Shown here one piece after another: positions 12,889-60,741 of a stretch of DNA of 64,000 nucleotides. The DNA is from Nageia nagi (taxonomy: Eukaryota; Plantae; Pinophyta). How positions within the stretch are numbered: position 1 is the first letter of the stretch; each line of letters begins with the position of its first letter. The translations under genes were made by a program, and so were the position numbers. The notes below the pieces were generated by a model. It saw only the letters and a list, made by a program, of their open reading frames with translations, was not told the origin of the DNA and did not search any database. The stretch is from contig JBITNC010000001.1 of assembly GCA_050084985.1 (NCBI GenBank), positions 48,360,001 to 48,424,000 on the forward strand. Direction: 5' to 3'.

Positions 12889-15800
12889 ATGGTTGAAACC
12901 TTCATACTCAAGCATATACTCGACGGTTCTAACTTCGGTATATGGGAACCTCGTATGAGAGCTGAGTTATAAGCAAGGAAGTTGTGGCAGACAGTTAATG
13001 AAGATCTAGTCGCTCCTACAGATGAGAAGGCTCTTGAAATTTATAACTCAAAGAATGAGTTAGCAACCTCAATGATCTATCGTGTAGTTTCAGATGACAT
13101 TCTTCTCATGATCTCTTCTTTGACATCAGCAAAAGAAGCTTGGGATAGACTAAAGAAAATTTACCTTGGGTCCAAATTTTCAAGGAGGTTCACCATTCTA
13201 AAAAGTTATTGCAATATCATCAAGGTGAAGATGAAAGTGCCTCAATCTACTTGAACAAAATCATTGACCTCAGGACACAACTGGTTGGCTGTGGGTGCAA
13301 TTGGATCAATGATGAGTTCATGGTCTTCATCATTCTTCAAAGCCTCTCTACAAAGTTCAGTAACTTTATCACAGTTATGGAGACTAGGCTCGATGATGAA
13401 GAAGATGTCATCTCTCTTGACAACCTTTCTAGACTCCTTCTAAGCATGAGGAAACTTTGAACAAGAAAATGTTGAACCTTTCTCCAAAGGATAATAGCAT
13501 TGCTCTAGGAGCAACCAAAACTCCTTTCAAGAAGACATTCAAACATTATAAATTCAAAGATAACAAATCCTCATCTACCATCAGGAAGCACGGTAACTTC
13601 AAGCAAAGGAATGATAAAGCTAGATCAAGCAAACCAACACCTATAGAAAAGTTTGATGGAAATTGTAACTTTTGTGGCATCTTTGGTCACAAAGAGCATG
13701 ATTGTCGTAAAAAGAAATTTGCTCAAAAAGGCAAGGGAAATGCAAATGTAAGAAATTTCAATAATAAAAAGAAGAACAAGCATGCTGCTACTGTTGCCTA
13801 CTACTCAATGACTCAAACTATTTCAAATGATTGGATTATTGATTCAGGATGCACAAATCACATGTGTTATGAAAAGGATAAGTTTGAAAAGGATAAGTAC
13901 AAGAAGGATGCAGTTGTGATAGGTGATAATACAGTCCTTGATGTTCAAGGAACATGGAGTGTGAAGATTCATGGAAAGGCTCTTGATAATGTCTTTTATA
14001 TGCCTAAACTAAGGATGAATATTATCTCTGTAATTCAGATTACAAGAAAAGGATACTCATTTGAGTTTACCTCACACTCCTGGTGTGTTAAGAAAGGACT
14101 TGCCACCTTGATGAAAGGATCAGTAAAGGATGACCTTTATATTATGTATCAAGTTCCTTCAAAGATGTGTCTTGCTACAAATGTTTGTTTAAAGGGCAAT
14201 CTTTGGCATCAACGATTAGGGCACCTTAACCACAAGAGTATTCAAGATATGAAAAATCAAGAACTTGTGGAAGGTTTACCTAATATTTCACCCACAAATG
14301 GTCTCTATGAAAGGTGCATTCTAGGAAAGATGAATAGGTAAAAGTTTGAAAAAAGATAAGGCAACTCGAGCCACTCGTCCTCTTCAGCTTGTGCATTCAG
14401 ATTTGATGGGTCCGTTTCAGACTAAGTCTCTAAGGGGAGCTTCTTATGTTCTGACCTTCATTGATGACTTCAGTAGGATGACATTTGGTTATCTACTTGA
14501 GCACAAGGATCAAACCTTTGACAGGTTTAAAGACTTCAAGGCTCTTGTTGAAAATCAAACTGATTTTAAGATCAAGATGCTGAGATCTGATAATGGGGGT
14601 GAGTATAATAGCAATGAGTTTAACGACTATTGTGTTAAACATGGGATCAAGTGGCAATTCATAATCCCATACACCCCTCAGCAAAATGGAGTTGCTGAAA
14701 GGAAGAATCACACCATTATGGAAATGGCAAGATGCATGTTGGGTAACCTTCCTAGTTTCTTATGGAGAGAAGCTGTTCACACTACTGTTCACACCCTAAA
14801 TAGGTGTCCTACTAAAGCAGTTGAAGGAAAAACTCCGTATGAAGCATGGACGGGAAAGAAACCTAACATCTCACACTTCAAGGTCTTTGGTTGTGATGCA
14901 TTTGCCTTCATTACCTCAGAGAAAAGAAAGAAGCTAGACAAAAGATCAGAAAAATGCATCTTTATGGGGTATGATAATCAGCATAGAGGTTACAGGCTCT
15001 ACTCCTCATCCCATAAAATAGTCTTTGTTTCTAGGGATGTTAAATTCAATGAACTTCCTAAGGATACGACTTCTCATGCTGAGGTGTCTGATTCAGATGA
15101 TTCTACGCCTGAACCTAACTGGTTGGATGATCATGTAGGGAAGTCACCACAAGAGCAAAATTCTCCAGCTCAGAGAATTACAAGGAGTATGACCTTGAAT
15201 AAATCCTTATTTGCCAAAATTGATAATATGAATGAGCCATCAACATTCAAAGAAGCTTCCAAGCAAGAGTGTTGGATGGAAGCTATGAAAGTTGAGTACG
15301 AGGCACTCATGAAAAATGAAACTTGGGATTTGGTTCCTTATCCCAATGAGAAAAATGTGATTGGAAATAAATGGATATACAAGGTCAAGTACAATTCTGA
15401 TGGAGAAGTTGAAAAATATAAAGCAAGGTTAGTGGCCAAAGGATTCACTCAGAAATATGGTATTGATTATGAGGAAACCTTTGCTCCTATGGCCAAGATG
15501 CCTACTGTTAGGATAATCCTTGCTCTTTCTGCAGCTCAAGGTTGGAAAGTTTTTGAACTTGATGTTAAGAGTGCATTTCTCAATGGTGACTTGGATGTAG
15601 AAATCTATATGAATCAACCAGAAGGATTTATTCCAGAAGGAAAAGAGTCTCTTGTGTGCAAGCTAAAGAAGTCTTTGTATGGACTTAAATAAGCACCTAG
15701 AGCATGGTACAAAAAAATTTCAGGATTCTTTACAGATATTGGTTTTTCCAAGTGCTTCTCTGACTCAGATCTCTATGTACTCAATCAAGGAAAAGACGTG

Positions 15801-16779
15801 GTCTTAATTCTCCTTTATGTGGATGATCTTCTCATAACAGGCAACAATATTGAAATCATCCAAGAGTGCATATCCAAACTGAAGGCAACATTTGAAATGA
15901 CTGATCTAGGTCTATTGCATTACTATCTTGGAATGCAAGTATACCAACATAAAGATTTACTTATCTTAGTCAATCTAAGTATATATCAGACATCTTACAA
16001 AAGTTTGGAATGGAGGAGTGTAGATATGCTGCAATACCTGTTTCTCCTGGAATCGTTGTATCACTGAGCTCAGATTCTCAATTGGTTGATGCTACAACTT
16101 ATAGGTAATTGATTAGTAGTCTTCTGTATCTGACTATCTCTCGACCTGATATTACCTTTGCAATGAATCTGATGGCACGATTCATGCAAAAACCATATGT
16201 TGAACACCTCAATGCTGTTAAGAAAATCTTGAGGTATGTGGCAGGGATAAAGGATCTTGCTCTTAAGTATTCCAAAGTGCCCTCAATTGTTCTCTCAGGG
16301 TTCTCAGATTCTGATTATGGGGGAGATAGAGATGATAGAAAATCAACCTTACATATGTGTTCAGCATTGGTTCAGGTGCTATCTCTTGGGCTTCCAAGAA
16401 GCAACCTGTTGTGACTCTTTCTACCACCGAAGCTGAATATCGAGCCATGTCTGTTACCGCCCAAGAAGCTATTTGGCTAAGGCATCTTCTAAATGAAATT
16501 GGGTATAAGCAAAATGGCCCATATCTTATTTCTTCAGACAATCAATCGGCTATCTCTTTGGCTAAGAATCATGTGTTCCATCAGAGAACCAAGCATGTGG
16601 AAATCCAAGCCCATTTTAGCAGGGAGAAGGTTCTAGATGACATCATACACTTGGAGTATTGTCCATCTACTGAAAACTCTGCTGATTTATTCACCAAGCC
16701 CCTTCTTGAAGCTCAGTTCAGCAAGCTTAGGGATTCTCTCGGGTTGGTGAAGTTGCCCTCAAGGGGGAGTGAAGTTTGA
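12889..16779 (+). pseudogene. Copia gag-pol polyprotein, disrupted
   Basis: ATG at 12889 (MVETFILKHILDGSNFGIW); zinc knuckle CNFCGIFGHKEHDC; protease WIIDSGCTNHM; GAG-pre-integrase LWHQRLGH; integrase LVHSDL/RSDNGGEY/QQNGVAERKN; RT YKARLVAKG and LYVDDLL; RNase H FSDSDY, STTEAEY, ADLFTK. Several stops and frameshifts. Confidence 0.95.
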
Positions 16780-43300: not shown

Positions 43301-46300
43301 TTGCAACACTTAAAGCCTTGGCAATTGGGACCTTCCCTGCTCGTGGGCTTATTTTTGTCTGTTGGCAAAAATCATTTTAAATTAAAAAAAATATTTTGTT
43401 TATTTTATTTTATTATTTTGTTGATTTGTTTTTTAAATTTAAAAACAATAAAGTCAGATATAATTTTTAAGGAAAAATAAAAATTGAATTTTTTATTTAA
43501 AAAGTTGAAAACAGAATATTAATTTTTTATTTTCTTATTTCATGTTTTAAAACACTTGCATAAATATATGAATTATATATTCTATGTGAGATGATTAAAA
43601 TTTTTTGTTTTCATATGAAAATAATAAATTATGTATATTCTTCGTTCTTCTTTCAAGTCCAAGTGTATATATATATATATATATATAGAAAGAATCTTAG
43701 GTACAATATCTATCTGCAATTCTATAGTTCGGTTTAAAGAAATGAAAGACCCTAGTTACACAACAAAGCAAATCAACTCAACATTGATACCAAATGCTAT
43801 ACTACTCTATAGAAACACATGGAATAACATAAAAAATGAGAATGGGGCACTTGGATGCCCGTAAGAATTGCATGTAACTAAGAGTTAGGGTTTTTTTCCC
43901 TTTTATAGAAGTAAGGTGAGTAATCCCTAATTATTACTTAAGTGCTAGTTATCCTAATGACATAATTAACCAGTAATGAATTTTTAATTAAACATTCATA
44001 AATAATATCTAATATGCCCAACCAAGTATGCTATGTCTTAACTGGATACACAACGGTTAATGCATCTTGGACATTCTGATTATCGTTTCAACATTTTTTT
44101 AATTTTGAAAGTCACATATAACTTAACTTTCTTGTAAAATTCTGACAATTGATTTTATGAAAGTAATTATTTATAGCTTGCAAAAGCGCATGTTACACTT
44201 TACCTTTTTGAATCATATTAACAAATCATTGCTTGATGTTTAAGATATCTCCTTAAATCTTACCTGGCATTTAAGAAATACTGACAATCTATTTTGGAAG
44301 TCTTTCTAAATGTGTGAACATTGAACTGCGTATCTCCATGTCTCATACAAAGTTCATCTGCTTGTAATCTGGATATTGATCATTATCATGTTGGCAGTAA
44401 ATCAAACCATGCAAATCTGTCTTATCGGATGTCTTCAAAGAACATAACTAGACCTCTAATACTAGTGCTACCCCTAAAAACAGTTTTGAGTGGTACTGCT
44501 AAGGAGTCAAAACCTAGCATGCAACAGCTATCTACACGTTATACACAACCTGGATACAATTCACTTGGGATTAGCTAACTAGTACAAGAGTAGGTTTATG
44601 CATTATAATCTACTGTAAAAGATAAGACCTATAATGTCTAAGCTTGTACAGATGCTGAGACTGCTTAATGAGCATGCAAATAGTACTATGTGTTTCTCTC
44701 TATTCCATCTTCTGGGTACGTATTTATATCTGATATTATTTTGATGTTCAATCTTCTTAAACATGTTTTTTGCACCAAAAAAAACAGAACTCTGCATAAT
44801 CAAGTATAAGTTAAGAATTGCAAGCATTCCATTACATATAGGTTATGTAGGTTTGAACTTTGATACCTTGTGTCATTCACATCTATTATGCAGATTTCTA
44901 TTCCCAGCCTTGGGAGGTGTATTATTTGGGTATGACATTGGTGCTACTTCAGGTGCTGTTGTATCTTTAGCGGTACAAAAATCTATAACCTTGTTTATTT
45001 ACATTGTCCAAAATCATGTTCTCTTGGTCATTTCTTGTATTCTAACTATAACTCTAGAAACTTTAATCTAGTTAAATGTAAGAAATCTTGCTAGAGATTC
45101 TCTTTATTTTGCAATTAAAATTCTGATTTAACTACAGAAATTTCAGAACTGAAAATTATGAACAAAATTTCATAGAAAATTCTGAAAATTTCTCAAACAA
45201 CACTCAACAAATTTAAAAAAATTATTCAAAAGTGGAAACAAGGAATATAGCCAAAAGGGCACCAAAACATACATTAAAATATGGATATGAACTTCCTAGA
45301 GTTGGAAGTCCCACCTAGGGCACAAAATGGATCTGAAAATGTTCTCAAACTACCCCCAAAATGGACGATCCTCCTTGACTGATTTCTTAGGTTGAAACTT
45401 GCACAATTTCACTTTTCTTTCTCCAATCTGATGGCTTTAATAAAACTGAAAAACCTTTGAAGCACACTTGTAAACTCTGAATAAGTTTACCACAAGGAAC
45501 TAGAGGCTGGTCACTCCTCAAGTTCTATCTAGAGAGGTTGGCCTTTCTCTTTGGATCGCACTTTTGTAGCCGACCATCTGCAGAAGGAATGATATTGTTG
45601 AAGCAATAATGTCTAGGGTTTCTAAATGGCAAAAAGATCCTTGCAAATGACAAACACCTCCTTCAAATAGACCCACGTTCCACTTTAGGGTTTATGAACA
45701 TTCTTCTAGATCCAACCATCCATATTGCTCCAAGTTGGAGATTAAATCTCCACCCTTATATGCTCATAACATAATTTTTTTTTTAGCACATGTTGAAATA
45801 AAGTACTAATGTTAATGACATATTATAATGTCACTTTATAAAAAAAATAAACATATTACTTAAATACTCTAGCACTTCACTTAAATATCTCTAAAACACT
45901 TCTAGACATACTAGAACACCATTAAACCTCTTCTAACTAGAATATCCACCATAAGGAGCCAAGTTTAGTGTTCCTTGACAACTTTAAGAGGTTATTACAT
46001 CAAAAGTAATTACAAAACACTTACTAAAACACTTTAGAAAATTTTGTGCAATATTTACAAAGCTGTTAAAAAATGGGGACATTACAATACCACCCCTCCC
46101 AAAATTTCAGTCCTCAAGCAATTTAGACTGAACTTGGCAATCCCTTCCACTAAATCAGGTACTTAGAAATAGTCTGACTTGCCAAGTGCTATGTTCAGAA
46201 GATCAGCTGTTATTTCAAACCAATTCTGTCCATTATCCTGCAAACTTCCAATAAAGTATGCCCATGATAAAAGAGCATTGCTACAGAAAAGAAATGGCTT

Positions 46301-49300
46301 GTCTCATTGTCAATTAATCCACAACTATCTTCGAGGCAATGTTTTTGAACAAAATATGTACTCCCATGTCTAGTTGCAAAGTGATTTGATGTTAGAGTTT
46401 GCTCAAACTCCAGGTCCCTCTTGACTGATCTAGTGTCACCTGTAATATAATCAAACTTGTCAACATCTAACCCATTCCGTGCATTTGCTACAATATCAAA
46501 CAAAATATTCTGCTCTTATATATATACTGAAATCATATGAAAGAACAACATGACGAGGATGCAAATTTTTTGTATTATAAGGCACACATTGAATTTGTTG
46601 CCACTGAGACGAGGTCTGCTACTGTTGATCCATCTTCATAGCTGCCCTAGTCTCATTACTAAATATCACACCTGGGTCCCAAGATTTGGAGCGCTTGTTT
46701 CTTTTTTCACAAAGAATATGTTCCGTGTGTTCCTCATGAGTGATTGTCTTGCTACATTCATCACTTACTAATTCATCCTCATTAAAATCATTATGCATGC
46801 CCTTCTCCAAAGGAATCAAACTTAGGGAGTCTAAATAAAAATTTCCAACTTATGCAATGTTTGAACCTCATTATCAATGCTATGAGAAATAAATCGGCGA
46901 TTGTCATAAAAATTAGAATTGGCTTCATACCTGTCAATAGTAACTCCCTTACTGTTTATTTCTTTACCAGTTTTAGTAGTGTCAAGCTTCACAAGTGGGT
47001 TTTCCACATTCACTTCTGCTTCTATCTCAAACAATGAGTTATCTATAAATTGATAATTATTTTCACTTGTTGCTATTACATTTCTACTCTTATCAAAATC
47101 ATAATTTACCTCATTCCTTTCAACTGTGACTTTTTTACCAAAATCTTCAATGCTAGGCACTAGTACAAGACCCTGGTTCAAAAATCTGCAGGTAATCCTC
47201 GGATTCTCGTGAGAAATCATGGATTGGAAGGGTGTCAAGTTATCTAGGGGTGAAATCCAGCTTCCGCGAGTTTGAGACGTTTTCTGGTGAGTAACTCGGG
47301 CAAAAATTGTGACAACTTGGTGGAAATCCGGACGGTGTTGTTCGAGGAGTGGAGTACGACAAGGACGTGATTCGTGGGTGGAAGGCTTTGCGCAATGCCA
47401 TCAAACGCTAGATTCAGATTGGTTACCAAAAGTGCATCCCCTCTTCTCTCATGGATTCGTATGATTGTTATGAAAATGATGTGAGTGACTCGAAACTAAT
47501 GGACGAGACGTGGATCTGATTACAAGTCAAAAAGAACAAAACTAAAGTTCAGCACTGGGTAGGAGAGCATCACAGCTTCCATACACTTTTTTCAATTCGA
47601 CATATTCACGAACCCCACCTCTCATCCACTGCAATTTACCGTGTGGCCAAGCTTTGCTTACTGGTCCAGTTGCCTTAAATAAACCACGTCTTGCCTATGT
47701 GATTGGTGATGATTTGATTATATATTTGATTCTTTATAGATTTTAGATCACTCAATAATCCTACTAGTCCCACCTTCTTCTCGTAAAAAAAGTCTTTATT
47801 TTGACAAACAAAATCTCATATAAAAATGATATTTTAATTACAGATTTTTTATAAATCCCTTTTATATTCGTTCTATTTCACTCCATTTAAAATTTGATAT
47901 ATTATTATTTCACATAAATTTACTTCAACTAGAAAATCACAACTATTTAATGTTGTCCGCTGCTAGTATCTTCCCTTCAAAACATTACACACAGAGAATT
48001 GGACTTCCTTGAAAATATTAAATGTGATCTTTGCTTAATATATTAAAACAAAATTGAATTTTACCAATAAATTTAAAGATAAAATTTAGTTTTACTAATA
48101 GTATATTTAAATACATTATTAAAAAATTAAGAAGATTAGACATATTTTGAAAAGTACTGATAACATATTTTTTTGTTGAGTTTTTCCTGAGTACTGCCCG
48201 AGTTGCCGAGAACTTGCGGAAGTTTTTTTGGCTGAGTAATTCCTGAGTCCAAGTTTTCCAACCTTGTACAAGACTATAGAATTCTGATTTGTCCTCAACA
48301 TTTTCTGTTTTGTATTGTTCATTTGGCTGCTTATTGTCTTCATGACTATCTTCAATTTTGTCTTCAATTCTTCAAAAGAAGTTGATTTAGCTTGAGATTT
48401 CTTTTCTTCATTTGACATAATTAATGAATCATGGTGCCCATGTCCATCATACAAAACTCTAATAGGATTTTCCTTTCCATATTCTTGTCCATACTCTGCA
48501 ATAGATAAAAATTTATTAGATTTTTCCTCATACAAATAAACTATTGTTGGCATTTTTATGGCATGTGTGACCATTAGCAATTCAGGATCTCCACCCCATA
48601 CATGTGGCTTTCTAATCTGGTGAACATAGGCATCAAAGTATCCCATTAAAAACCATTCCATTTCTTTCCTTCTTTTTAGAAATTCATTTGCAACTTTAGC
48701 TCTCAAATCATTAGCGAAGTCTCTCATAGTGCTCTCATTTGGAGAAGTTTCTCCTTTTATTAAACAAACACCGAAAGAAATAGCTCATTATAAACAACTA
48801 CCATCACCTTACATTCCTGTAATCAGAACATAATCTTCAATATCCATTTTTGATTTTTTTGTTCTTTTGTTGCTTCTCATTGCACTTTTCTTGATCTGGT
48901 GTGGAAGTATGAGTTGTTGAATGTCTAGGCCCAGAGCAAGTAAGTTTTTGTGGCTGATCTCTCTTGGCATCAACACTACTGCTTTTCCGTCTCACATTTT
49001 TCGCCAAACTTTTCCAATAGCTATCAAAGGAAACTTGTTTTTGGAAATTTTCTGATTTTGCTTCATGTTCCTCAAATATGACATACACCCCTTCATATTC
49101 CAAAATTAGGGTATCCATTTCCTCAATGGATACATGATTTGGATGTGGATCAAAATATTCAGGAGTAAACCTAAGGATCTCCATGAAAATACAAAAAATA
49201 CTGCAGAAAAGCCTCATAGATCTAGTTTAACTGAAAAATATACCTTGCATGCTTGAGTTTACGCTTGCATGTCACATGCATGGGCTTTTTGGATTGAATC

Positions 49301-52300
49301 TTAGTATACACTTTCCCTTAGGCTGGCAGAAAACTAGCTCTGATACCACTATAAGAAACCTTGCCAAAGATTTTCTTTATTTTGCAATTTAAATTCTTAT
49401 CTAACTATAGAAATTTCATAATTGAAAATTATGTAGAAAATCTCATAGAGAATTCTGAAATTTTCCCAAACAACACTCCACAAATTTTATAAAAATTATT
49501 CGAAAGTGGAAACAAGAAATATATTCAAATGGGTATCCGAAACATACATTAAAATTTGGATATGAACCTCATAGGGTTGGATGTCCCAACTAGGGAACAA
49601 AATGGATATGAAAATGTTCTCAAACTACTCCCAGAGTGGATGATCCTTCTTGACTGATTTCTTAGGTTGAAACTTGCACAATTTCACTTTCCTTTCTCCA
49701 ATCTTATGGTTTTAGTAAAACTAGGGTCTTCACCCTTATATCTGAAATTGAAAAACCCTTGAAGTACACTTGTAAACTCTGAATAAGTTTACCACAAGGA
49801 ACTAGAGGCTAGTCACTCCTCAAGTTCTATCCAGAGAGGTTGGTCTTCCTCTTTGGATCCCACTTTTGTAGCTGACTGTTTGCAAAAGGAATAACATTGC
49901 TAAGCAATAATGTCTAGGGTTTCAAAATGGCAAAAATTTCCTTGCAAATGAAAAATGCCTCCTTCAAATAGACCAACATTCCACTTTAGGGTTTCATGAA
50001 CATTCTTGTAGATCCAACGCTCCATATTGCTACAAATTGGAGATTAAATCTCCACCCTTAAAATGTTCATAACTTAAAAAATGTTTTAGCACATGCTGAA
50101 ATAAAGTACTAATGTTCATGATATATTATAATGTCATTTTATTAAAAAAAACATATCACTTAAATACTTTAGAACTTCACTTAAATACCTCTAAAACACT
50201 TATAGACTTGCTAGAACACAACTAAACCCCCTCTAACTGGAACATCCACCATAAGGAGCCAAGTTTAGTGTTCCTTGACTACTTTAAGAGGTTATTACAT
50301 CAAAAGTAATTACAAAACACTTACTAAAACACTTTAGAAAATTCTGTACAATATTTACAAAGCTTATAAAAAATGCAGACATTACATTAAAACAAACAAA
50401 TACAAATTACATTGTATGATTGCTTTAGCTTGCCTTTTGTAGAGGCTATCAACCCTCTTTTTTAAACCATCATTATTTCCCTGTGAAAACATCATAGCTT
50501 TAGCATTATTGACTGGTGACATACTTGAATTCCAGTAGTTCTCTATTAAGCTATCATCTCTTTAAGGGATGTGAGCCTCATACATAGCCATTTCAAGTTT
50601 TGAACTCTTCATTATTGCATTTGGTTGTGTCTTTCAAGGATTTCATAGAGGTCTATTTGACCCTTGTTACTCTCCAATGATCATTATCAGATCTTGTATG
50701 GACTTGTTTGGGAGTCCATAAGAGGGAAAGAGAGAATGACCCTTGTCCCACATGTTGTACTAGATGCCGCCTACATGACTCTCAGGATCTTTTGAGGACT
50801 CGACAGATCTCATCCTACTTTTCTTCTAGCAATGCTATCACGCTCCGCCCCAGCAAGACCCAAGTGGGTTTGGTTTTTTGACCGCCCCAACGCTTGATAT
50901 ACTCGGATGTGTCTTTGTTTTTTTTTAGGGTTTTGGCACCCCTCTTTGTATTCACTTTGGCTGTAATTGTTTATTTTCCTGCTTTTTTTTCGAGGATAGC
51001 CCCTCTAAGGTCCCCACTTGCTCTTATTTCATGCTTGTATTCTCTAATCCCATTAACTGCTGTTGGTCATCTGCAAACATTAATATGTTTTCTTTCTTTC
51101 TTCAACACTCCAATGTTATTCAAGTTCAGGCACAAATCTTACTCAAGAGAAGAGGAGTTAGTTTCATAATCAGATCATGTATGGGCTTGCTTGGGTTGAT
51201 CGGTGATGAAACTATCTTAAACAAGTAAAGTTGTGAATCTTTGAAGTTCGTGCAATGTTACTCGAACAGTTTCTTTTATATTGTTTTAATTCAGTTCTAT
51301 TTCCCTTTTTACTTTTTTTTGTTTCAGAGCTCCTTTTAGGCTTTTACAATTTATTTTCTCTAAAGAAACATTTTGTCATAGAGACCCATTGACTGACTTT
51401 GATCATTAGTGAATATTAATTAATTTTCTTTCTGTTTTATTTCTTGAAGAGTTTTGGGCTTCATACATAACCTTTTAAAGTTTTGAACTCTTCATTATTG
51501 CTATGGTTTGAGTCAAAGCACTTGGTGATCCACTTTAACTAAAGCCCATGCTAATGGACAAAAATCACAGGGATGTTTTTTCAATATACAAAGACACACC
51601 TTTAAACTAAGCTTATGGTAACTCTTTGTCAATCCAAGTCAAAGTTTTGCTACAGCTTGTTTATTTGGTAGTATGAGCATCTAATGGTAAAATGGGGCAT
51701 TTGTGTTTGTGTATGTTATGGAAGTTTTTGGTGTAGGGGTCAAAAGTTACTTACCATCCTGATTTGCAGTATTCTTGAGATTCAACATGTTTGCCTTTTG
51801 ATGAGCTATTGATTTTACGATATTACAATGATGTGTCTGGAGCTAGTTAAATGGAGAGAACTTTTCCTTGTAAATTTGTGATCTTATCATATAGCAACAC
51901 AATGAAAACTTGATTCCTGGAGGCATTGTTATGTTGTGCATGCTCAAATGCATCCATCTCATCTCTGTCCTTTTTTATTGCATGTCTTAGCTTTGTTGAT
52001 GAAAACAACTAGGCAAGAAGATCAATGAAAAATCAAGCTTGATGGTATTTAAAATCAAATATTGAAAATCATTTGCATTCTTTATATTGTTTAAACTGGA
52101 ATGTGATCTATGAAACCAACTCTTTATTCAGGTACCCTATTTCAAATTTGATTTGTTTTGATTTCAATATATGCTTCGGGTTCTGACAGCTTGTTTTGTA
52201 TGTCACAGTCAGCTGAATTAAGTGGAACAACCTGGTACAATCTGACATCAATTGAAACAGGCCTTGTGGTGAGATTAATGGCTTAAGCATATAGTCATAT

Positions 52301-54035
52301 ATATCTTTCAACATGAAAATGGTACTGACCTTCCAGTTTTTTCTATAGAATTTTGTAAAATTGTAGGACGTTTTGGTGAATATGAGAATGTAAGTCGTTG
52401 TGTCTGTATGCAGGTTAGTGGTTCCCTTTATGGTGCTTTATGTGGGTCTATAGTTGCATTCAATATTTCAGATTTTCTAGGTATTTCGTCTATCCATCTT
52501 GAGAAAAAGCATTTCGTGCTATATTTTTCAGCATGCACATGGACTCATATTTAAGGATCAAGTGCTCTGCAACAAGGTTTTGCATTTTTCATTGAATATT
52601 ATAAAGATATTAAAATAATGATGTAAATTTTTTGGCTGAAGGAAGGCGAAGGGAGTTAATTTTAGCAGCTCTGCTATATATGCTGGGAGCTTTAATCACG
52701 GGCTTCGCACCTGCACTTCCTGTGCTTATAGTTGGTCGGCTGTTATTTGGTTTTGGTATAGGTTTGGTAAAGCTTATGCATCTCTCTTCATAGAAGGATG
52801 ATTTGCAGTTCTATTTTAGTTTGTTTATTGCTTTAATTGAATCTCTTATGGTGTCAGTTTTTGAATTACAACCAACATTTGCTATTTAATTTAAGTTTCA
52901 CTTCCATATGATAAAGCCTGTTGGACATCGAACTGTTGCAGAGTGTTTTGTTTTTTCAAATTCAGGTATACATAGAATATAGTGTTTTAAATAGGCCACC
53001 ATCACCTCAAAAAGCAAGAGTATTGCCTCTGACTGTTTCTATCAAACAGGCCATGCATGCAGCTCCATTGTACATTGCAGAAACTTCTCCATCAACAGTT
53101 CGTGGAACACTAGTATCTTTGAAGGAGCTTTTCATAGTTTTAGGAATCTTGGTAAGTGTGAAAAGAATTCATACTTATCTGATTCCTGATAACCATATCA
53201 TAACACTGGATTGGTTGATGTTAATACTGACTCAGTTTCCTTATGCAGCTTGGTTACCTTTTGGGTAATCTAGAAATTGATGTGGTTGGTGGATGGAGAT
53301 ATATGTATGGCGTGAGTGCACCAATTGCTGTAATCATGAGCATTGGCATGTGGTGGTTGCCACCATCCCCACGTTGGCTTCTTCTCCAGGCAGTGCAGGG
53401 GAAAGGAAATCTTCAAGCATTGAAAGAAAAAGCGATTGTTGCATTGAGTAGATTAAGAGGTCGTCCTGCTGGTGATGTAGCCAGCGATGAGCAAATAGAA
53501 GAAACCTTGAGATCCCTACAATATGCACTTCGAGATCAAGACAAGGAAGCTAATTTCTTGGAGATTTTTAGAGGAAGCAGTTTGAAGGCCTTCATTATTG
53601 GTGGAGGAGTGGTGATTTTCCAGCAGGTTGTGTCATTCCAACATTTTTATGGGTTCTTGTGACGGTTTTTTTTTTTTGGATTAGACTCTATTAACTGTCT
53701 AGCCATGGAAGTTCTTGTAAAATTCGACTATCTATTTTGTATTTGAATATTTATTCATACAATTGAGGATCTCTGAAAGAAAATGTGTGTCCCTGATAAA
53801 TTGGAAACACTTTTTTATTTGTCAGATAACTGGCCAACCAAGTGTACTGTATTATGCAGCTTCCATTCTTCAGGTAGACAAGAAATTTAAATTTTCATGA
53901 TATCAGATGGTGATAAAATCCTAGAAAATGCCATGCTATTTGTTACATAATATTGGCGCTTCTGATTTGTAGAGTGCAGGATTTTCTGCAGCATCTGATG
54001 CCACTCGGGTTTCTGTAATTCTTGGCTTTTTCAAG
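25154..54035 (+). CDS. VGT3: Plastidic MFS sugar transporter, D-xylose-proton symporter-like 3 (VGT3/pSuT, At5g59250-like); exons 1-10, 3' exons outside the window
   Basis: Ten GT-AG exons with consistent phases join into one frame: transit peptide, [103 protein letters not shown]. Confidence 0.93.
28388..33750 (-). mobile_element. Old degenerate Ty3/Gypsy (chromovirus-like) element in intron 1
   Basis: Diverged direct repeats at ~28388-28765 and ~33381-33750 (LTRs). Minus-strand remnants of protease (KKVVVLLD), RT (FLGLTEY), RNase H ([29 protein letters not shown]) and integrase ([22 protein letters not shown]). Confidence 0.85.
32166..32463. mobile_element. hAT-type MITE nested in the Gypsy remnant
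   Basis: TIR CTAAGTTGCA / TGCAACTTAG; subterminal GTTTCC/GGAAAC motifs; degenerate 8-bp TSD GTTAAGAT / GTTCAAAT. Confidence 0.7.
34604..35816. mobile_element. Probable hAT-derived non-autonomous element carrying a host gene fragment
   Basis: Imperfect inverted ends TCCATGAAGTTTT / AAACTTTTCATGGA; GC-rich subterminal GGGGAT/GACG motifs; TSD not resolved. Confidence 0.5.
35085..35497 (+). pseudogene. Captured SANT-domain fragment of a POWERDRESS / NCoR-SMRT-like gene
   Basis: [11 protein letters not shown]...[11 protein letters not shown]...[51 protein letters not shown] resembles the first SANT region of PWR/NCoR; frameshifts and stops. Confidence 0.85.
35829..37042 (+). mobile_element. Solo LTR of the non-autonomous Gypsy family
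   Basis: T(T)TGACGTCCCC...TTCTACA; TSD TTTAT at 35824-35828 and 37043-37047; aligns with the LTRs at 55180 and 59470. Confidence 0.85.
37988..38097 (+). CDS. VGT3: VGT3-like exon 2
   Basis: TATAG|[37 protein letters not shown]|GTGAGT. Confidence 0.85.
39300..39650 (-). mobile_element. Gypsy integrase C-terminal remnant; possible very old LTR pair at ~38600-39070 and ~43740-44015
   Basis: [16 protein letters not shown] resembles the Gypsy GDWVFLRLQPYKQ motif; the flanking repeats share GTAAGAATTGCA and CCTTTTATAGAAG. Confidence 0.5.
41616..43340 (-). mobile_element. Degenerate retroelement-like insertion with a single disrupted ORF and a LINE-like 3' tail
   Basis: Minus-strand broken ORF ~43020-41800 (NKMRSEP...[27 protein letters not shown]); minus-strand end CTTATCAATACCAAAAAA near 41616-41635. 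Confidence 0.45.
44894..44972 (+). CDS. VGT3: VGT3-like exon 3
   Basis: TGCAG|a [26 protein letters not shown]|GTACAA. Confidence 0.95.
46429..46515 (-). pseudogene. SAMHD1/VENOSA4-like HD-domain dNTPase fragment (29 aa)
   Basis: [29 protein letters not shown] versus the family motif EKxFLYDIVANxRNGIDVDKFDYxxRD. Confidence 0.85.
47172..48266. mobile_element. hAT non-autonomous element inserted into the LTR element's ORF
   Basis: Perfect 8-bp TSD TACAAGAC at 47164-47171 and 48267-48274; imperfect TIRs CCTGGTTCAAAAA / (rc) CAAGGTTGGAAAA; ACTCGG-type subterminal motifs. Confidence 0.88.
48422..48847 (-). pseudogene. Intronless OTU4-like (At3g57810-type) OTU deubiquitinase domain inside the LTR element
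   Basis: [26 protein letters not shown]...[23 protein letters not shown]...[22 protein letters not shown]...[28 protein letters not shown]. Cys box, WGG and His box are all present; three stops near the Cys. Confidence 0.93.
50640..51060 (+). mobile_element. Probable LINE 3'-end fragment
   Basis: GC-richer degenerate coding-like stretch followed by CCCCTCTTTGTA...GGATAGCCCCTC, a 3' UTR style resembling plant LINE ends; weak. Confidence 0.3.
52209..52268 (+). CDS. VGT3: VGT3-like exon 4
   Basis: CACAG|[20 protein letters not shown]|GTGAGA. Confidence 0.93.
52414..52480 (+). CDS. VGT3: VGT3-like exon 5
   Basis: TGCAG|[22 protein letters not shown] g|GTATTT. Confidence 0.95.
52642..52766 (+). 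CDS. VGT3: VGT3-like exon 6
   Basis: TGAAG|(G)[41 protein letters not shown]|GTAAAG. Confidence 0.95.
53050..53151 (+). CDS. VGT3: VGT3-like exon 7
   Basis: AACAG|[34 protein letters not shown]|GTAAGT. Confidence 0.96.
53249..53626 (+). CDS. VGT3: VGT3-like exon 8
   Basis: TGCAG|[21 protein letters not shown]...PPSPRWLL...GGGVVIFQQ|GTTGTG. Confidence 0.96.
53826..53873 (+). CDS. VGT3: VGT3-like exon 9
   Basis: GTCAG|[16 protein letters not shown]|GTAGAC. Confidence 0.96.
53973..54035 (+). CDS. VGT3: VGT3-like exon 10
   Basis: TGTAG|[21 protein letters not shown]|GTCTGT. Confidence 0.96.
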
Positions 54036-55179: not shown

Positions 55180-58100
55180 TGTGACGTCCGCTTTGTCCAA
55201 TTGTAATTAGTTGTGGGGTCCGAAAGGTTCCTCTTGTAATATATTTTTTGTACTTTCATGTTGTAACTTAGGATAGGAGACTTAATGGGTCAATGGACCC
55301 CACTGTGAGCCTCAAGTGGGATGTCTCCCTTCTAAGGTTAGATTAGGTCTCATCGTCATACTTGGAGATCCCGAAACATGATTGTGGGAATCCCAAGGTC
55401 TATTTAGCATTGTATGGATAGATGAGCACTTAATGGCCCCAACGTTGAGATTGGGAGCATTTAGACACTTGCACCAGCTTGGGGGAGGCTTCTAGACCCC
55501 CACCTTGGGCCTTGAGACCCACGTTGCCCCTTAGGTGCCCACGCATGCTTCCTAGGCCCACGCATGCATTCTTGGGTCCACATGGAGCATAGGGGAGGCC
55601 CAAATACCCACGTTGAGCCTGGATTGATCCCTATGTGCTAACGTTGGGCCATGAGGGGATTGGGTGATGACATTGAGGTGTAATCCGGACCAAGGAAGGC
55701 TATATTAACCCTTGGAGTCTTATTATTGGATATACTTGATCATTATTACTTTCATATTGTTCAGAGGACATCAAGTCTTAGCGGTGCTAAATAGCCTTCC
55801 TAGGCGCAACGTCTAGAGGGCATTTAGGTTGAGGGGTCTTGTTTGTCTACGGCATTGGTGTAGCATCTTTGCCCATCTGATGGTATTCCAAGGTATTGCT
55901 TGTACCTTCGGTGGTTATCCATAATTTGAGGAGGGCTCCTTCGATGGTGAGGATTCTTATTTTGAGGAGGCATACTATCCCAGGGTTCTGATATTGTTCT
56001 AGTGGTGAGAGACACATTGTATTGCCCTAGTTGGCTCCTGAGAGGCCAACGTCAGCCCTTCTGGGCCTGGTATTGTATTGATATTCATTTTGATCATATA
56101 TACAGCCGAAAGGGCATTGGATCTCATATTTTATTATTGTTGTTCCATTATTGCAAGGTTGTGGTGCACTTTCCTATTTATGCATGTATGAGCCAGACGT
56201 TGGCATTATGAGATGATATTCATTGTTGTATGATTGTACTAGCTAGATGTTGGTGTATGAATGTTTTATTTTGTAACCCTAGCTTAGACGTTGGCATAAT
56301 TGCATTATGTTAGCTTGGTTCGGATGTCCTAACCCTAATGTTGCCATTTTGAGGGTTTGAATGCTCGTTGTGGATGCCCTAGGCTTGATGTCAGGGTTTG
56401 TTGGTTGGAATTGGTTGTTTTTTCTTTGAGTTCCATTTTGGATCATCATAAGTAGTATCAAAGCTTGGATTTGGCCAGCCTGTGGATGAGACTTGCAGTA
56501 CATCGTTACTACACCAGATCCAACACTCATAGAGAGATGGCATTCGCTAGGAAGAGCGGGAGATAACACACGGAGGAGGCATCTGCAAGAGCCGCCCATG
56601 AGGAGGATAGACGATTGTGGATGGAGGAATTGCCAAATGAGGATGCATTCGCGGATGAAGGGGAGGTGCAGAGAGAGAGAGATAGAGAGTTGCCAAGAGG
56701 AGTCCAACTACGTTTTGAGAATCCACCCTCGAATGGAAGTTTGATGAACTCATTTCGACCATTCACAACATGATTGGAGTGGTTACTACTATACAGCAGC
56801 AGTTGAACATGCATTTGGGTGTTCAAGAGGAGCCAAAGAGGCAAAATACCCCCCACATCACACTAGGGATGACAAGGAGGCCCCACGTCACACCAAGGAT
56901 GACAGAGAGGCCCCATATCACACCAAGGATGAGCATGAGGAGATCTTGTAGTTTGAGGGATCGAGAGTCAACTCACCATGGGTCGATGAGGTGTCTAGAG
57001 GCCACATTTTTGAGGTTCCACTCACATCGAGCACCCTAGGGTACAAACCCTCTCCTAGGGAGGTACTTGGAGGAGGACGTTGGCAGGATGGAGGAGCACC
57101 CTATCATCCCAAAACTATCCAAGCCTATGTTTGCAAAGAAGGCTGCAGAGGAGACAAAGAGTCATATTCCTAGCCCATTGGAGTTGAATTAGATTTTTAG
57201 GGAGTATTCTATGTTGGATCTAGGGTTGAAGTGAGACGTCAATTTCAATGGCTACCTATAGCTTTTGGGGTTGAAGGGAAGCAATTCGCATGGTCCATGC
57301 ATTTCTAGCAATTCATGGGATGAGAAGGACCTGCAACACAAAATCAATAAAATGCAGGTGCAAATGTTTGATGGAAAGAAGATGACGGCTAGGGCATGGT
57401 TACATTAGTTGCAAACCTATTTCACCCTAAGCCCTAACATGGTGGAGGAGGATGCGATTCATTTCACATCATTACATTTTGAGGGAGATGCTTGGAGTGG
57501 TGACAGCATGGGGTGATTAGCCAAGGGTATTCTCTCATCGCCTCTTTTGATGAGTTCGCCAAATGTTTGGTTAGGCGGTTCAACTGGAAGGAGGAGAATG
57601 ATTAATTCCGGGATCTAACATCATTAAGGCAACAAGGGATAGTGGATGACTATGTGATAAAGTTTCAGAGGATTATTGTCATGATCCACCATCTTTCTAA
57701 GGAGAGGTTAACATTCCTCTTCATTGAAGGTTTGATGGAGCCGTTGTTGGGGATGGTCAAGGTATCTTCCCCTAAGAGCCTTGATGACGTTATCCGGACA
57801 GCATATGACCTTGAACCCATGATGAAATCCCTCAAGGGAGGGTAGATGTATAGAGGGCCTGTTGATCGGAAGCCATTCGTTGACAAAGAAGGTCCTAGCA
57901 AGGCCAAACCCTTCCCTTCGCCTAGAACAAATCAGTTGGATGCAGCCAAACAAAGGAAGTTAAGAGAAGAAGGCAAGTGCTTCTACTGCAAGAAGACTTG
58001 GGAGCCAGGGCACCTTGTCATGGGAAAGGAAAAGTGCACTACATAGAGGTGTTTTCAAAATATGAATCAAATGACTCAGATTTCAAGATTGGAGTTGACA

Positions 58101-60741
58101 CCCTAGAGCAGGGAGCACCTCAGGCAGAAGGAATGTTGGGTAGTATGATAGCTTCACTACATGGGGTGAAGAAGTACCTTACCTTGAAGTTGGTAGGGTA
58201 GGTCGGAGGACAGGATGTGATGGTATTGATTGATCCAAGAGCATCTCACAACTTCACTGATGCAGGCTTTGCAGAGAGGAAGAACTTGAAGACCAAGGGA
58301 CTTGAGGGTTTTAGGGTTTCCAACGCCAACAGGAAGCTCACATTGGTAGACCACTTCGTTGAGAGGTTTGGTGTAAGATTGCAGACTTGTATAGTGAGGG
58401 AGGACTTCTACATCTATCCTTTGAAGGGACATCCTCACATCATCTTAGGAGTGCAGTGGCTGTATGACTTGGGTGATATCCACACCAACTATCAAAAACT
58501 CACTATGAGTTTCGAAATCGATGGGAAGACTCACACCCTACAGGGGATTAGAGATGATTGTCCATAGGTGGACAATAAGCAGCTGGAGGTGATCGAAAGG
58601 TGTCAAAAGGAGGCATAAGATGGAGTCATGTTGGGAGAGGAGGAGTGCAAACGTGAGATGAGGGGTATTGGTGAGCTTCTGTGCCTCACGTTGCAGCCCA
58701 GGGAGCTTGGAAGAGCTACGTTGGGTTTTGGGGAAGTTTGGTACCCCACGTTCAACCTTGGAGAGGATTTCCACCTCATGCTAGATATTGAGAAGGTTGA
58801 CCACCTGACATTGAGCCTTGAGGAGGTTGGACATCCCAGTTGGACTCAGAGAGTTAGGAATCCCATGATGAGCATCCAGGAGGCTTACTATCAAATGTGG
58901 AACTGCAAGGAGATGAGATACCCCACGTTGGGTATTTGGGAGGATTGCCTTCTGTTATTGAGCTTTCGGAAGACTGGACACCCCACGTTGGGTATTTGGG
59001 GAAATTACCACTTGACGTTGAGCCTTAGGGAGAATGGGCAACCCACATTGGACATCTGGAGAGCTAGGCATGCCATGTCAAACTATTGGGAGTTTGGGAA
59101 CCTCTCATTGAAGCTTGGGGAGGCTGGATATACCATGTTGAGTTTTGAGGAGTTCTGGCCTCACTCATGGAGCAAAGGCTCTACTTGTTTTCACTTACCC
59201 ATGATTTTCTTAAGGTTCTTGCAAGGACACCTTCGCTTTGATGCACGTGCATCCTCATGTTAATGGAGGACAACCATAGAGCAACTAATGAGGAGTGACA
59301 GCTACAACAAACTACATTGGTACATGGATACGAAGCTTCAACAATATATTCCATTTTGCTAGCATTTCATCATCATGAGCCCAGCTACTAGGGCTAAAGG
59401 ATTCTTGGAAGAGAATATGTTTAGTCTTCCACCATTGCTTGAGGGCAAGCAATTCGAGAGGGGAGGCTTTGTGACATCCCCCTTGTCCAATTGTAATTAG
59501 TTATGTGGTCCGAAAGGTTCCTCTTGTAATATACTTTATTTATGCATTGTACTTTCATGTTGTAACTCAGGATAGGAGACTTAATGGGTCAATGGACCTC
59601 ATTGTGAGCCCCAAGTGGGACATCTCCCTCATAAGGTTAGATTAGGTGTCATTGTCATACTTGGAGGTCCCGAAACATGATTGTGGGAATCCAAGGTCTA
59701 TTTAGCATTGTATGGACGTATGAGCACTTAAGGCCACAACGTTGAGATTGGGAGCATTTAGACACCTACACCAGCTTGGGGGAGGCTTATGGACCCCCAT
59801 GTTGGGCCTTTAGACCCACGTTGCCCCCCAAGGTGCCCATGCATGGTTCCTAGGCCCATGCATGCATTCTTGGGTCCACGTGGAGCATAGGGGAGGCCCA
59901 GATACCTAAGTTGAGCTTGGATTGATCCCTAGGTGCTAACGTTGGGCCATGAGGGGATTGGGTGATGATATTGAGGTGTAATCCGGACCAAGGAAGGCTA
60001 TATTAACCCTTGGAGTCTCATTACTGGATATACTTGATCATTATTGCTTTCATATTGTCTAGAGGACATTAAGTCTTAGCGGTGCTAAGCAACCTTCTAG
60101 GCACAAGTCTAGAGGGCATTCAGGTTGAGGGATCCTATCTATCTACGGCATTGGTGTACAACCTTTGCCCATCCGATGGTATTATAAGATATTACTTCTA
60201 CCTTCGGTGGTTATCCAGAGTTTGAGGAGGGCTCATTTGGTGGAGAGGATTCTTATTTTGAGGAGGCGTATTGTCTTAGGGTTTCGATATTGTTCCATCG
60301 TGAGAGACACATTGTATCGCCCTAGTTGGCTCTTGAGAGGCCAACGTCAGCCCTCCTAGGCCTTGTATTGTATTGATATTTATTTTGATCATATTACAAC
60401 CAAAAGGGCATTAGATCTCATATTGTATTGTTGTTGTTCCATTATTGCAACGTTGTTGTGCACTTTCCTATTCATGCATGTATGAGCCAGACGTTGGCAT
60501 TATGAGATGATATTTATTGTTATATGATTGTACTAGCTAGATGTTGGTGTATGGATGTTTTATATTGTAACCCTAGCTTAGACCTTGGCATAATTGCATT
60601 GTGTTAGCTTGGTTCGGCTGTCCTAACCCTAATGTGACCATTTTGAGGGTTTGAATGCTTGTTGTGGGTGCCTAGGCCTGACATCAGGTTTTGTTGGTTG
60701 GAATTGGTTGTTTTTGCTGAGTTCCATTTTGGATCATCACA
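55180..60741 (+). mobile_element. Complete non-autonomous Gypsy-derived LTR element (gag + protease + repeat ORF; no RT/RH/INT)
   Basis: TSD TTAAT at 55175-55179 and 60742-60746; LTRs 55180-56450 and 59470-60741; PBS TAGTATCAAAGC at 56453; PPT GAGAGGGGAGG at ~59456-59466; gag CFYCKKTWEPGH; protease VLIDPRASHNF...ILGVQWL. Confidence 0.95.
58680..59170 (+). repeat. 30-bp (10-aa) tandem repeat within ORF 58628..59263
   Basis: CCCACGTTG-type motif recurs at 58688, 58718, 58748, 58778, 58808 and onward; translated units such as WYPTFNLGED, DHLTLSLEEV, GHPTLGIWGN. Confidence 0.85.

Follow-up and report, generated by a model that had tools for sequence, protein, structure and literature searches.

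The window analysed here, a stretch of 64,000 nucleotides from the genome of Nageia nagi (contig JBITNC010000001.1), contains a long terminal repeat (LTR) retroelement whose interior carries, in the sense direction, an intronless copy of the coding sequence of OTU4, a plant gene for a deubiquitinase (DUB) of the OTU type. The element is likely to be an old, inactive copy of a non-autonomous, gene-transducing LTR family of the Bs1 type that has neither gag nor pol, resembles the large retrotransposon derivatives (LARDs) and carries the captured OTU4 as cargo. Its anatomy is complete, its OTU segment recurs throughout a repeat family in relatives, and the copy is visibly decayed. A preliminary description, made from the letters of the stretch, had presented the element as one that replaced its pol gene with an OTU domain.

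The OTU4-derived block

The OTU domain (Pfam PF02338) was detected at 48122-48727(-) with E=7e-16, and tblastn searches with eight plant OTU4 proteins aligned in a single unbroken frame over 48392-48841 (E 1e-55 to 1e-63), the homology extending weakly to about 48976-48988 for some of the queries. The best protein matches of the block are plant OTU4 proteins of the At3g57810 type, with 57-69% identity (62% for Cryptomeria), and no relative above 69% identity was found in a library of 5.8 billion proteins or in a library of 1.84 billion representatives. Among solved structures, the closest chain is the OTU domain of a viral replicase (E=0.0035). The GDGSC, WGG and GHGHH motifs are kept, the frame runs on without a stop for about 42 codons beyond the host C-terminus, and three in-frame stops, at 48809-11, 48788-90 and 48785-87, flank the catalytic cysteine. 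The preliminary description had reported a complete intronless OTU domain collinear with OTU4, with GDGSC, WGG and the His box retained, and had called the copy dead on account of three stops; the Pfam and tblastn results agree with the former and the stops themselves with the latter.

Plant OTU4 loci were taken from a metagenome scan and the Rosa OTU4 protein was aligned to each of them. In nine genomic loci (L012, L015, L018, L021, L022, L023, L033, L035 and L040) the Rosa protein is divided into five blocks, with exon breaks at residues about 202, 243, 257 and 289 in all nine, and in two transcript-like loci (L001 and L002) it aligns in one block. The element aligns with Rosa residues 197-333 without a break (tblastn). 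Because the four conserved introns are absent from the element, its block stems from a spliced mRNA, and the alignments support its reading as an intronless, mRNA-derived copy of OTU4. Transduction of OTU4 via mRNA had been proposed before, together with a comparison of intron positions as its test; run on the nine plant loci, that comparison favours the proposal. The metagenome contigs contained host OTU4 genes and transcripts only, and no copy of the family.

The long OTU protein matches were also screened for gag, and the only one with Retrotrans_gag plus OTU was KAE8719670.1 of Hibiscus syriacus (Retrotrans_gag at residues 173-222, truncated OTU4 at 472-552). We do not regard it as a relative of the element: this lone, truncated gene model matches at 59% identity along about 50 residues and was probably produced by an annotation that fused a transposon with the OTU4 gene next to it.

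A repeat family with OTU in related organisms

Only three public sequencing runs contained words of the element, and their contigs were placed on 44700-50699 at a likeness of at least 80%. Two of these are DNA runs from two different related organisms, with 769 and 831 contigs on the element, most of them less than 95% alike. The summed contig depth is about 1 in the flanks, 24-322 in the LTRs, 17-91 over 46100-47299, 2-10 in a nested insertion, 82-253 in the OTU block and 62-137 upstream of this block. Where sites within the OTU block and immediately downstream of it were sampled, 10-23 contigs have an alternative base, and contigs tile 48369-49289, joining the OTU segment to the interior on both sides. 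These data support a repeat family with diverged copies, whose OTU and LTRs appear to occur together in both organisms.

A processed pseudogene of separate origin, or an insertion that reached one copy later, would likewise lack introns and stop at the host C-terminus. We consider such an origin very improbable, as neither a poly(A) run nor a flanking duplication, both looked for around the block, was seen, and as the block is multi-copy in the relatives and continuous there with the neighbouring interior. The family predicted by the preliminary description is thus found, and confinement of the OTU segment to one copy, which that description had set against it, does not agree with the many diverged contigs of the two relatives. 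A TSD or poly(A) belonging to the OTU segment itself, the second objection named there, is likewise not borne out.

Architecture of the element

The element has the structural features of an LTR retrotransposon, with direct LTRs, a short target-site duplication (TSD), a primer-binding site (PBS) at the 5' LTR and a polypurine tract (PPT) at the 3' LTR (Table 1). The placement of the PBS and the PPT indicates that the element reads on the minus strand and, therefore, that the LTR at 49350-50386 is the 5' LTR. The PBS TGGTATCAGAGC is the sole match in the 64 kb, and 2 of 100 shuffles yield one. The LTR termini are TG..CA in the left copy and TA..CA in the right copy. When aligned with MAFFT, the two LTRs are identical at 902 of 1006 positions (89.7%), with 60 transitions, 44 transversions and 35 gap columns, which corresponds to a Kimura two-parameter distance (K2P) of 0.112; blastn gives 86.7% over 1042 columns, and the direct-repeat comparison 87% over the first ~143 bp. 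The age that follows from K2P depends on the assumed rate, being ~4 My at 1.3e-8 and ~25 My at 2.2e-9 per site per year. Two LTRs of ~1 kb, the TTAAA duplication, the initiator Met PBS and the PPT had all been recognised from the letters in the same places, and the ~13% divergence counted then at the LTR starts matches the direct-repeat value. No further copy of the element was found by blastn within the window.

An LTR identity of only ~90% could be expected of two unrelated solo LTRs that happen to bracket ordinary DNA with scraps of genes. Such a coincidence is extremely improbable in view of the identical 5-bp duplications, of the PBS and PPT lying at the correct inner edges in the correct orientation, and of the co-amplification of the interior with the LTRs in the relatives.

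Table 1. Features of the element and of the surrounding transporter gene, in window positions
Feature	Position	Strand	Remarks
Transporter exon, major facilitator superfamily (MFS) sugar transporter, D-xylose-proton-symporter-like	44900..44962	+	Spliced pattern in run X3
TSD TTAAA, left	45072..45076	.	Identical pentamer at right side
Complete LTR element	45077-50386	-	Structural features all present; element and OTU both on minus strand
3' LTR (element orientation)	45077..46086	-	1010 bp, TG..CA; direct-repeat search, blastn and MAFFT
PPT	46087..46104	-	Reverse complement TTTTGGGAGGGGTGG; purine tract 46090-46104; abuts 3' LTR
SAMHD1/HD-dNTPase-like fragment	46423..46503	-	27 residues; sense to element, out of frame with OTU; phmmer against PDB
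Open stretch of family interior	46834..47169	-	112 codons; multi-copy in relatives
Private nested insertion	47172..48265	.	1094 bp; 9-bp direct repeat GTACAAGAC at 47163-47171 and 48266-48274
OTU4-derived block	48392..48841	-	OTU domain complete up to host C-terminus; single frame without introns; three in-frame stops
PBS TGGTATCAGAGC, initiator tRNA-Met type	49337..49348	-	1 nt from 5' LTR; exact match
5' LTR (element orientation)	49350..50386	-	1037 bp; inner terminus mutated, plus strand TA instead of TG
TSD TTAAA, right	50387..50391	.	Read from sequence
Downstream transporter exon	53243-53659	+	PF00083 relatives

The interior outside the OTU block

The interior measures 3.26 kb, or ~2.16 kb without the nested insertion. 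Among 20 open reading frame (ORF) pieces from both strands, none has a Pfam match to reverse transcriptase (RT), RNase H, integrase or gag, no frame of the element contains a zinc knuckle, and the element has no similarity to the Copia proteins encoded in the window itself. Of the attributes of an autonomous element or a chromovirus, that is gag, protease, RT, RNase H, integrase and chromodomain, none was detected. The lack of RT, RNase H and an integrase core had been noted in the preliminary description, and the Pfam results on the ORF pieces confirm it, as they do the non-autonomous nature of the element. Two of its terms are not supported: descent from a chromovirus has no evidence, as there is no remnant of RT, integrase or chromodomain to classify and the PBS type and TSD length are generic, and the statement that the element replaced its pol does no more than describe the absence of pol.

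Upstream of the 3' LTR, a short fragment resembles SAMHD1: phmmer against PDB returned 27 SAMHD1-type chains (best E=7e-4), all of which align with query residues 1-27 only, and the match covers the motif around DVDKxDY. No more SAMHD1 pieces were found in the ORF pieces on either side, and the 27 aligned residues compare with ~450 residues, an HD domain and metal-binding His/Asp in a SAMHD1/VEN4 dNTPase. The region is covered by family contigs in the relatives. The 112-codon open stretch has no Pfam match, no match among the 5.8 billion proteins within the length band and none in PDB below E=1. For the remaining interior, no homologue was detected in Pfam, the protein library or PDB; Rfam gave nothing at E<=1 over 44000-51500, and no relative was found among viral contigs.

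Two further candidates were discarded. A gag-like N-terminus has no Pfam match and no zinc knuckle, and its atlas look-alikes score only 0.79 (Myb/SANT), which is below the useful range. A single long chimeric ORF, restored by removal of the nested insertion, is not obtained, as the OTU frame and the ORF at 46831-47238 are one base out of register, a result of coordinate arithmetic and not of a joined sequence.

Decay of the captured OTU4

The block, with X at the stops, was aligned to 120 host OTU4 proteins, among which 79 columns are near-invariant (at least 95% conserved among hosts). The element copy is changed at 22 of these 79 columns, compared with a mean of 0.97 and a maximum of 8 in the hosts. 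A quick maximum-likelihood tree gives it a terminal branch of 1.54 against a median of 0.079, that is ~20 times the typical host branch. The element OTU attaches outside the angiosperm clade, near Cryptomeria, with which it has several residues in common that are not those of the angiosperm majority; the tree is unfinished and the branch long, so this placement is unsure. The phylogeny against host OTU4 suggested earlier has in this way yielded a long element branch outside the angiosperms, without a firm point of attachment. The observed to expected ratio of CpG is 0.15 in the 3' LTR, 0.12 in the 5' LTR and 0.12-0.25 in the element outside the insertion, and the commonest differences among the contigs are C>T and G>A. 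Both the loss of CpG and the preponderance of C>T and G>A are in keeping with methylation and decay over a long time. Taken together, these comparisons show a lineage that has drifted, and are silent on the period of family expansion.

It was suggested in the preliminary description that the OTU served the element as an accessory or counter-defence protein. The captured OTU could once have been a working deubiquitinase that aided the spread of the element, perhaps fused to Gag in a more complete ancestor, the present copy being a remnant. The OTU is indeed found throughout the family, with an abundance similar to that of the LTRs in the two related organisms, it lies in the sense orientation with its Asp, Cys and His motifs visible and its frame open past the host C-terminus, and ULP1 protease domains have been conserved in plant Mutator-like elements (MULEs) (PMC13317346). 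The copy at hand, for its part, lacks the open frame and conserved core of an active DUB, having three stops and the changes described above on a branch ~20 times longer than usual; the element offers no gag, start context or zinc knuckle, and its interior is shared with an obviously non-functional scrap of SAMHD1. The changed columns, the long branch and the neighbouring host-gene scrap form the pattern of passive cargo, and we judge a functional past for the OTU unlikely. A more elaborate scenario is distinctly improbable: an LTR lineage in a large, probably non-angiosperm genome would have acquired OTU4, perhaps as Gag-OTU, and would have spread as the DUB shielded its proteins or particles from ubiquitin-dependent control, the copies without pol and gag, such as the present one, being deletion derivatives. 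A retroelement-encoded DUB used against host defence is, in sum, unlikely.

We favour the interpretation of the element as a decayed member of a gag-less and pol-less family with passive OTU4 cargo, against which several points have to be weighed. The catalytic motifs of the element OTU are still recognisable. The neutrality of the OTU during expansion would follow from one decayed copy, the sole one read base by base. The nine intron-bearing loci are probably angiosperm, and their intron positions are not those of the source species' own OTU4. Finally, the depths in the relatives are summed contig depths and not copy numbers.

The history of the family may be pictured as follows. An ancestor would have taken up a spliced host OTU4 mRNA in the sense orientation, including no less than the two thirds of the coding sequence on the C-terminal side. 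The likely route is that, during reverse transcription, the nascent copy switched templates to, or recombined with, a transcript that was co-packaged or arose by read-through. Having retained LTRs, PBS and PPT, the element could have been copied in trans by the proteins of an autonomous partner, which would have given rise to many copies. The OTU would have travelled as cargo and is a pseudogene in the present copy, as are the scrap of SAMHD1 and what remains of the interior. This copy inserted in antisense orientation into a sugar-transporter intron, was later hit by a 1.1-kb DNA-transposon insertion and has been eroded, largely by CpG decay.

The nested insertion

The nested insertion carries weak terminal and subterminal inverted repeats and is interpreted as a non-autonomous DNA transposon, hAT- or Mutator-like, the 9-bp duplication fitting either. 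In the relatives, contigs join 47082, 47162 or 47171 directly to 48266-48300, across the insertion; these bridging contigs and the near-zero cover of the inserted sequence indicate that it is private and later. The observed to expected CpG ratio is 0.83 inside the insertion versus the low values of the element and 0.24-0.30 in the flanks, a contrast from which the insertion seems to be much younger or unmethylated.

Part of the insertion (47426-47699) is matched at ~84% by an 858-nt contig with a depth of 375 from run X3, the third of the public runs and by our guess an RNA run, and 47426-47823 is matched by a 1650-nt DNA contig in run X1. Both contigs suggest that the insertion contains part of a sequence that is abundant or strongly expressed. 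Neither Pfam nor Rfam gave a match for 47426-47699.

Genomic setting and expression

The transporter exon at 44900-44962 is followed by the intron that contains the element, in antisense orientation. A contig of run X3 matches this exon only and is unrelated to the window on either side of it, the pattern of spliced sequence. The best relative of the downstream exon (53243-53659) is a Ginkgo model, at 70%. On the element itself, run X3 has only low-depth, diverged contigs. One X3 contig matches the element OTU solely at 48438-48502, the most conserved peptide, again with unrelated sequence on both sides, and fits a host OTU4 transcript that is less than 80% identical elsewhere.

Other features of the window were recorded. 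A Copia-type element at 13457-16779 (+), with open frames for gag, integrase/RT and RNase H of 294, 448 and 140 codons, shows no sequence relationship to the OTU element. Just outside the latter, a 76-nt direct repeat is present at 50556-50631 and 51439-51514 (80-83% identical, 883 bp apart). The GC content rises up to 45-47% over 56000-60000, compared with ~33% elsewhere, and an ORF at 58628-59263 encodes a reiterated peptide motif of ~20 residues (…GHPTLGIW…).

Significance and comparison with known systems

The family would represent a processed deubiquitinase gene carried to high copy number and persisting in at least two related organisms, and would provide a clear case, open to dating, of an mRNA that was captured and then amplified. 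Many OTU4-like sequences in a genome could give rise to cross-talk with the host OTU4 through small RNAs, a conflict described for maize (bioRxiv 10.1101/777037). For annotation, unmasked copies will be miscalled as OTU genes.

Host genes transduced in the sense orientation have been described from plant LTR elements, among them Bs1, and from large surveys of rice, sorghum and maize; their capture is ascribed either to read-through or to a switch of template between RNAs packaged together (PMC7264820, PMC13317346). According to one of these two reviews, transduced ORFs are usually present in one or few copies (PMC7264820, PMC13317346). Neither review mentions an OTU cargo (PMC7264820, PMC13317346), and our literature search found no paper that links OTU domains to plant LTR retrotransposons.

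Bs1 of maize is likewise a pol-less LTR element with sense, intronless pieces of more than one host gene, for which an RNA capture route has been proposed (PMC7264820; PMC13317346). The element studied here also carries sense host coding sequence free of host introns, and its cargo, rather than being private to one copy, is common to family copies in two related organisms. Bs1 differs in that it keeps gag, is low in copy number and has an expressed chimeric ORF of gag and host sequence; in the present element no gag is detectable, three stops interrupt the OTU frame, the cargo is OTU4, and at least two related organisms contain the family in abundance. LARDs have in common with it the LTRs, the PBS, the PPT, a non-coding interior and a mobilisation that must occur in trans. 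The interior of a classic LARD is without a recognisable host gene, whereas about a fifth of the interior is here processed host coding sequence.

OTU domains are also carried by Dualen-type non-LTR elements. These OTUs, like those of RNA viruses and Helentrons, place an OTU-fold cysteine protease in a selfish element, but they are intact parts of the element's or virus's own polyprotein, whereas here we observe a broken, recent-looking derivative of a host OTU4, at 57-69% identity; the Helentron OTU is mentioned in PMC4067079. Kaonashi and other ULP1-carrying MULEs offer a parallel of another kind, being plant transposon families with a captured protease for a ubiquitin-like modifier. They are DNA transposons that acquired ULP1 by transduplication at the DNA level and in which ULP1 is conserved across eudicots (PMC13317346), whereas the present element belongs to class I, its capture is mRNA-derived and its only readable copy is decayed. 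What distinguishes the family among these systems is the identity of its cargo and its abundance.

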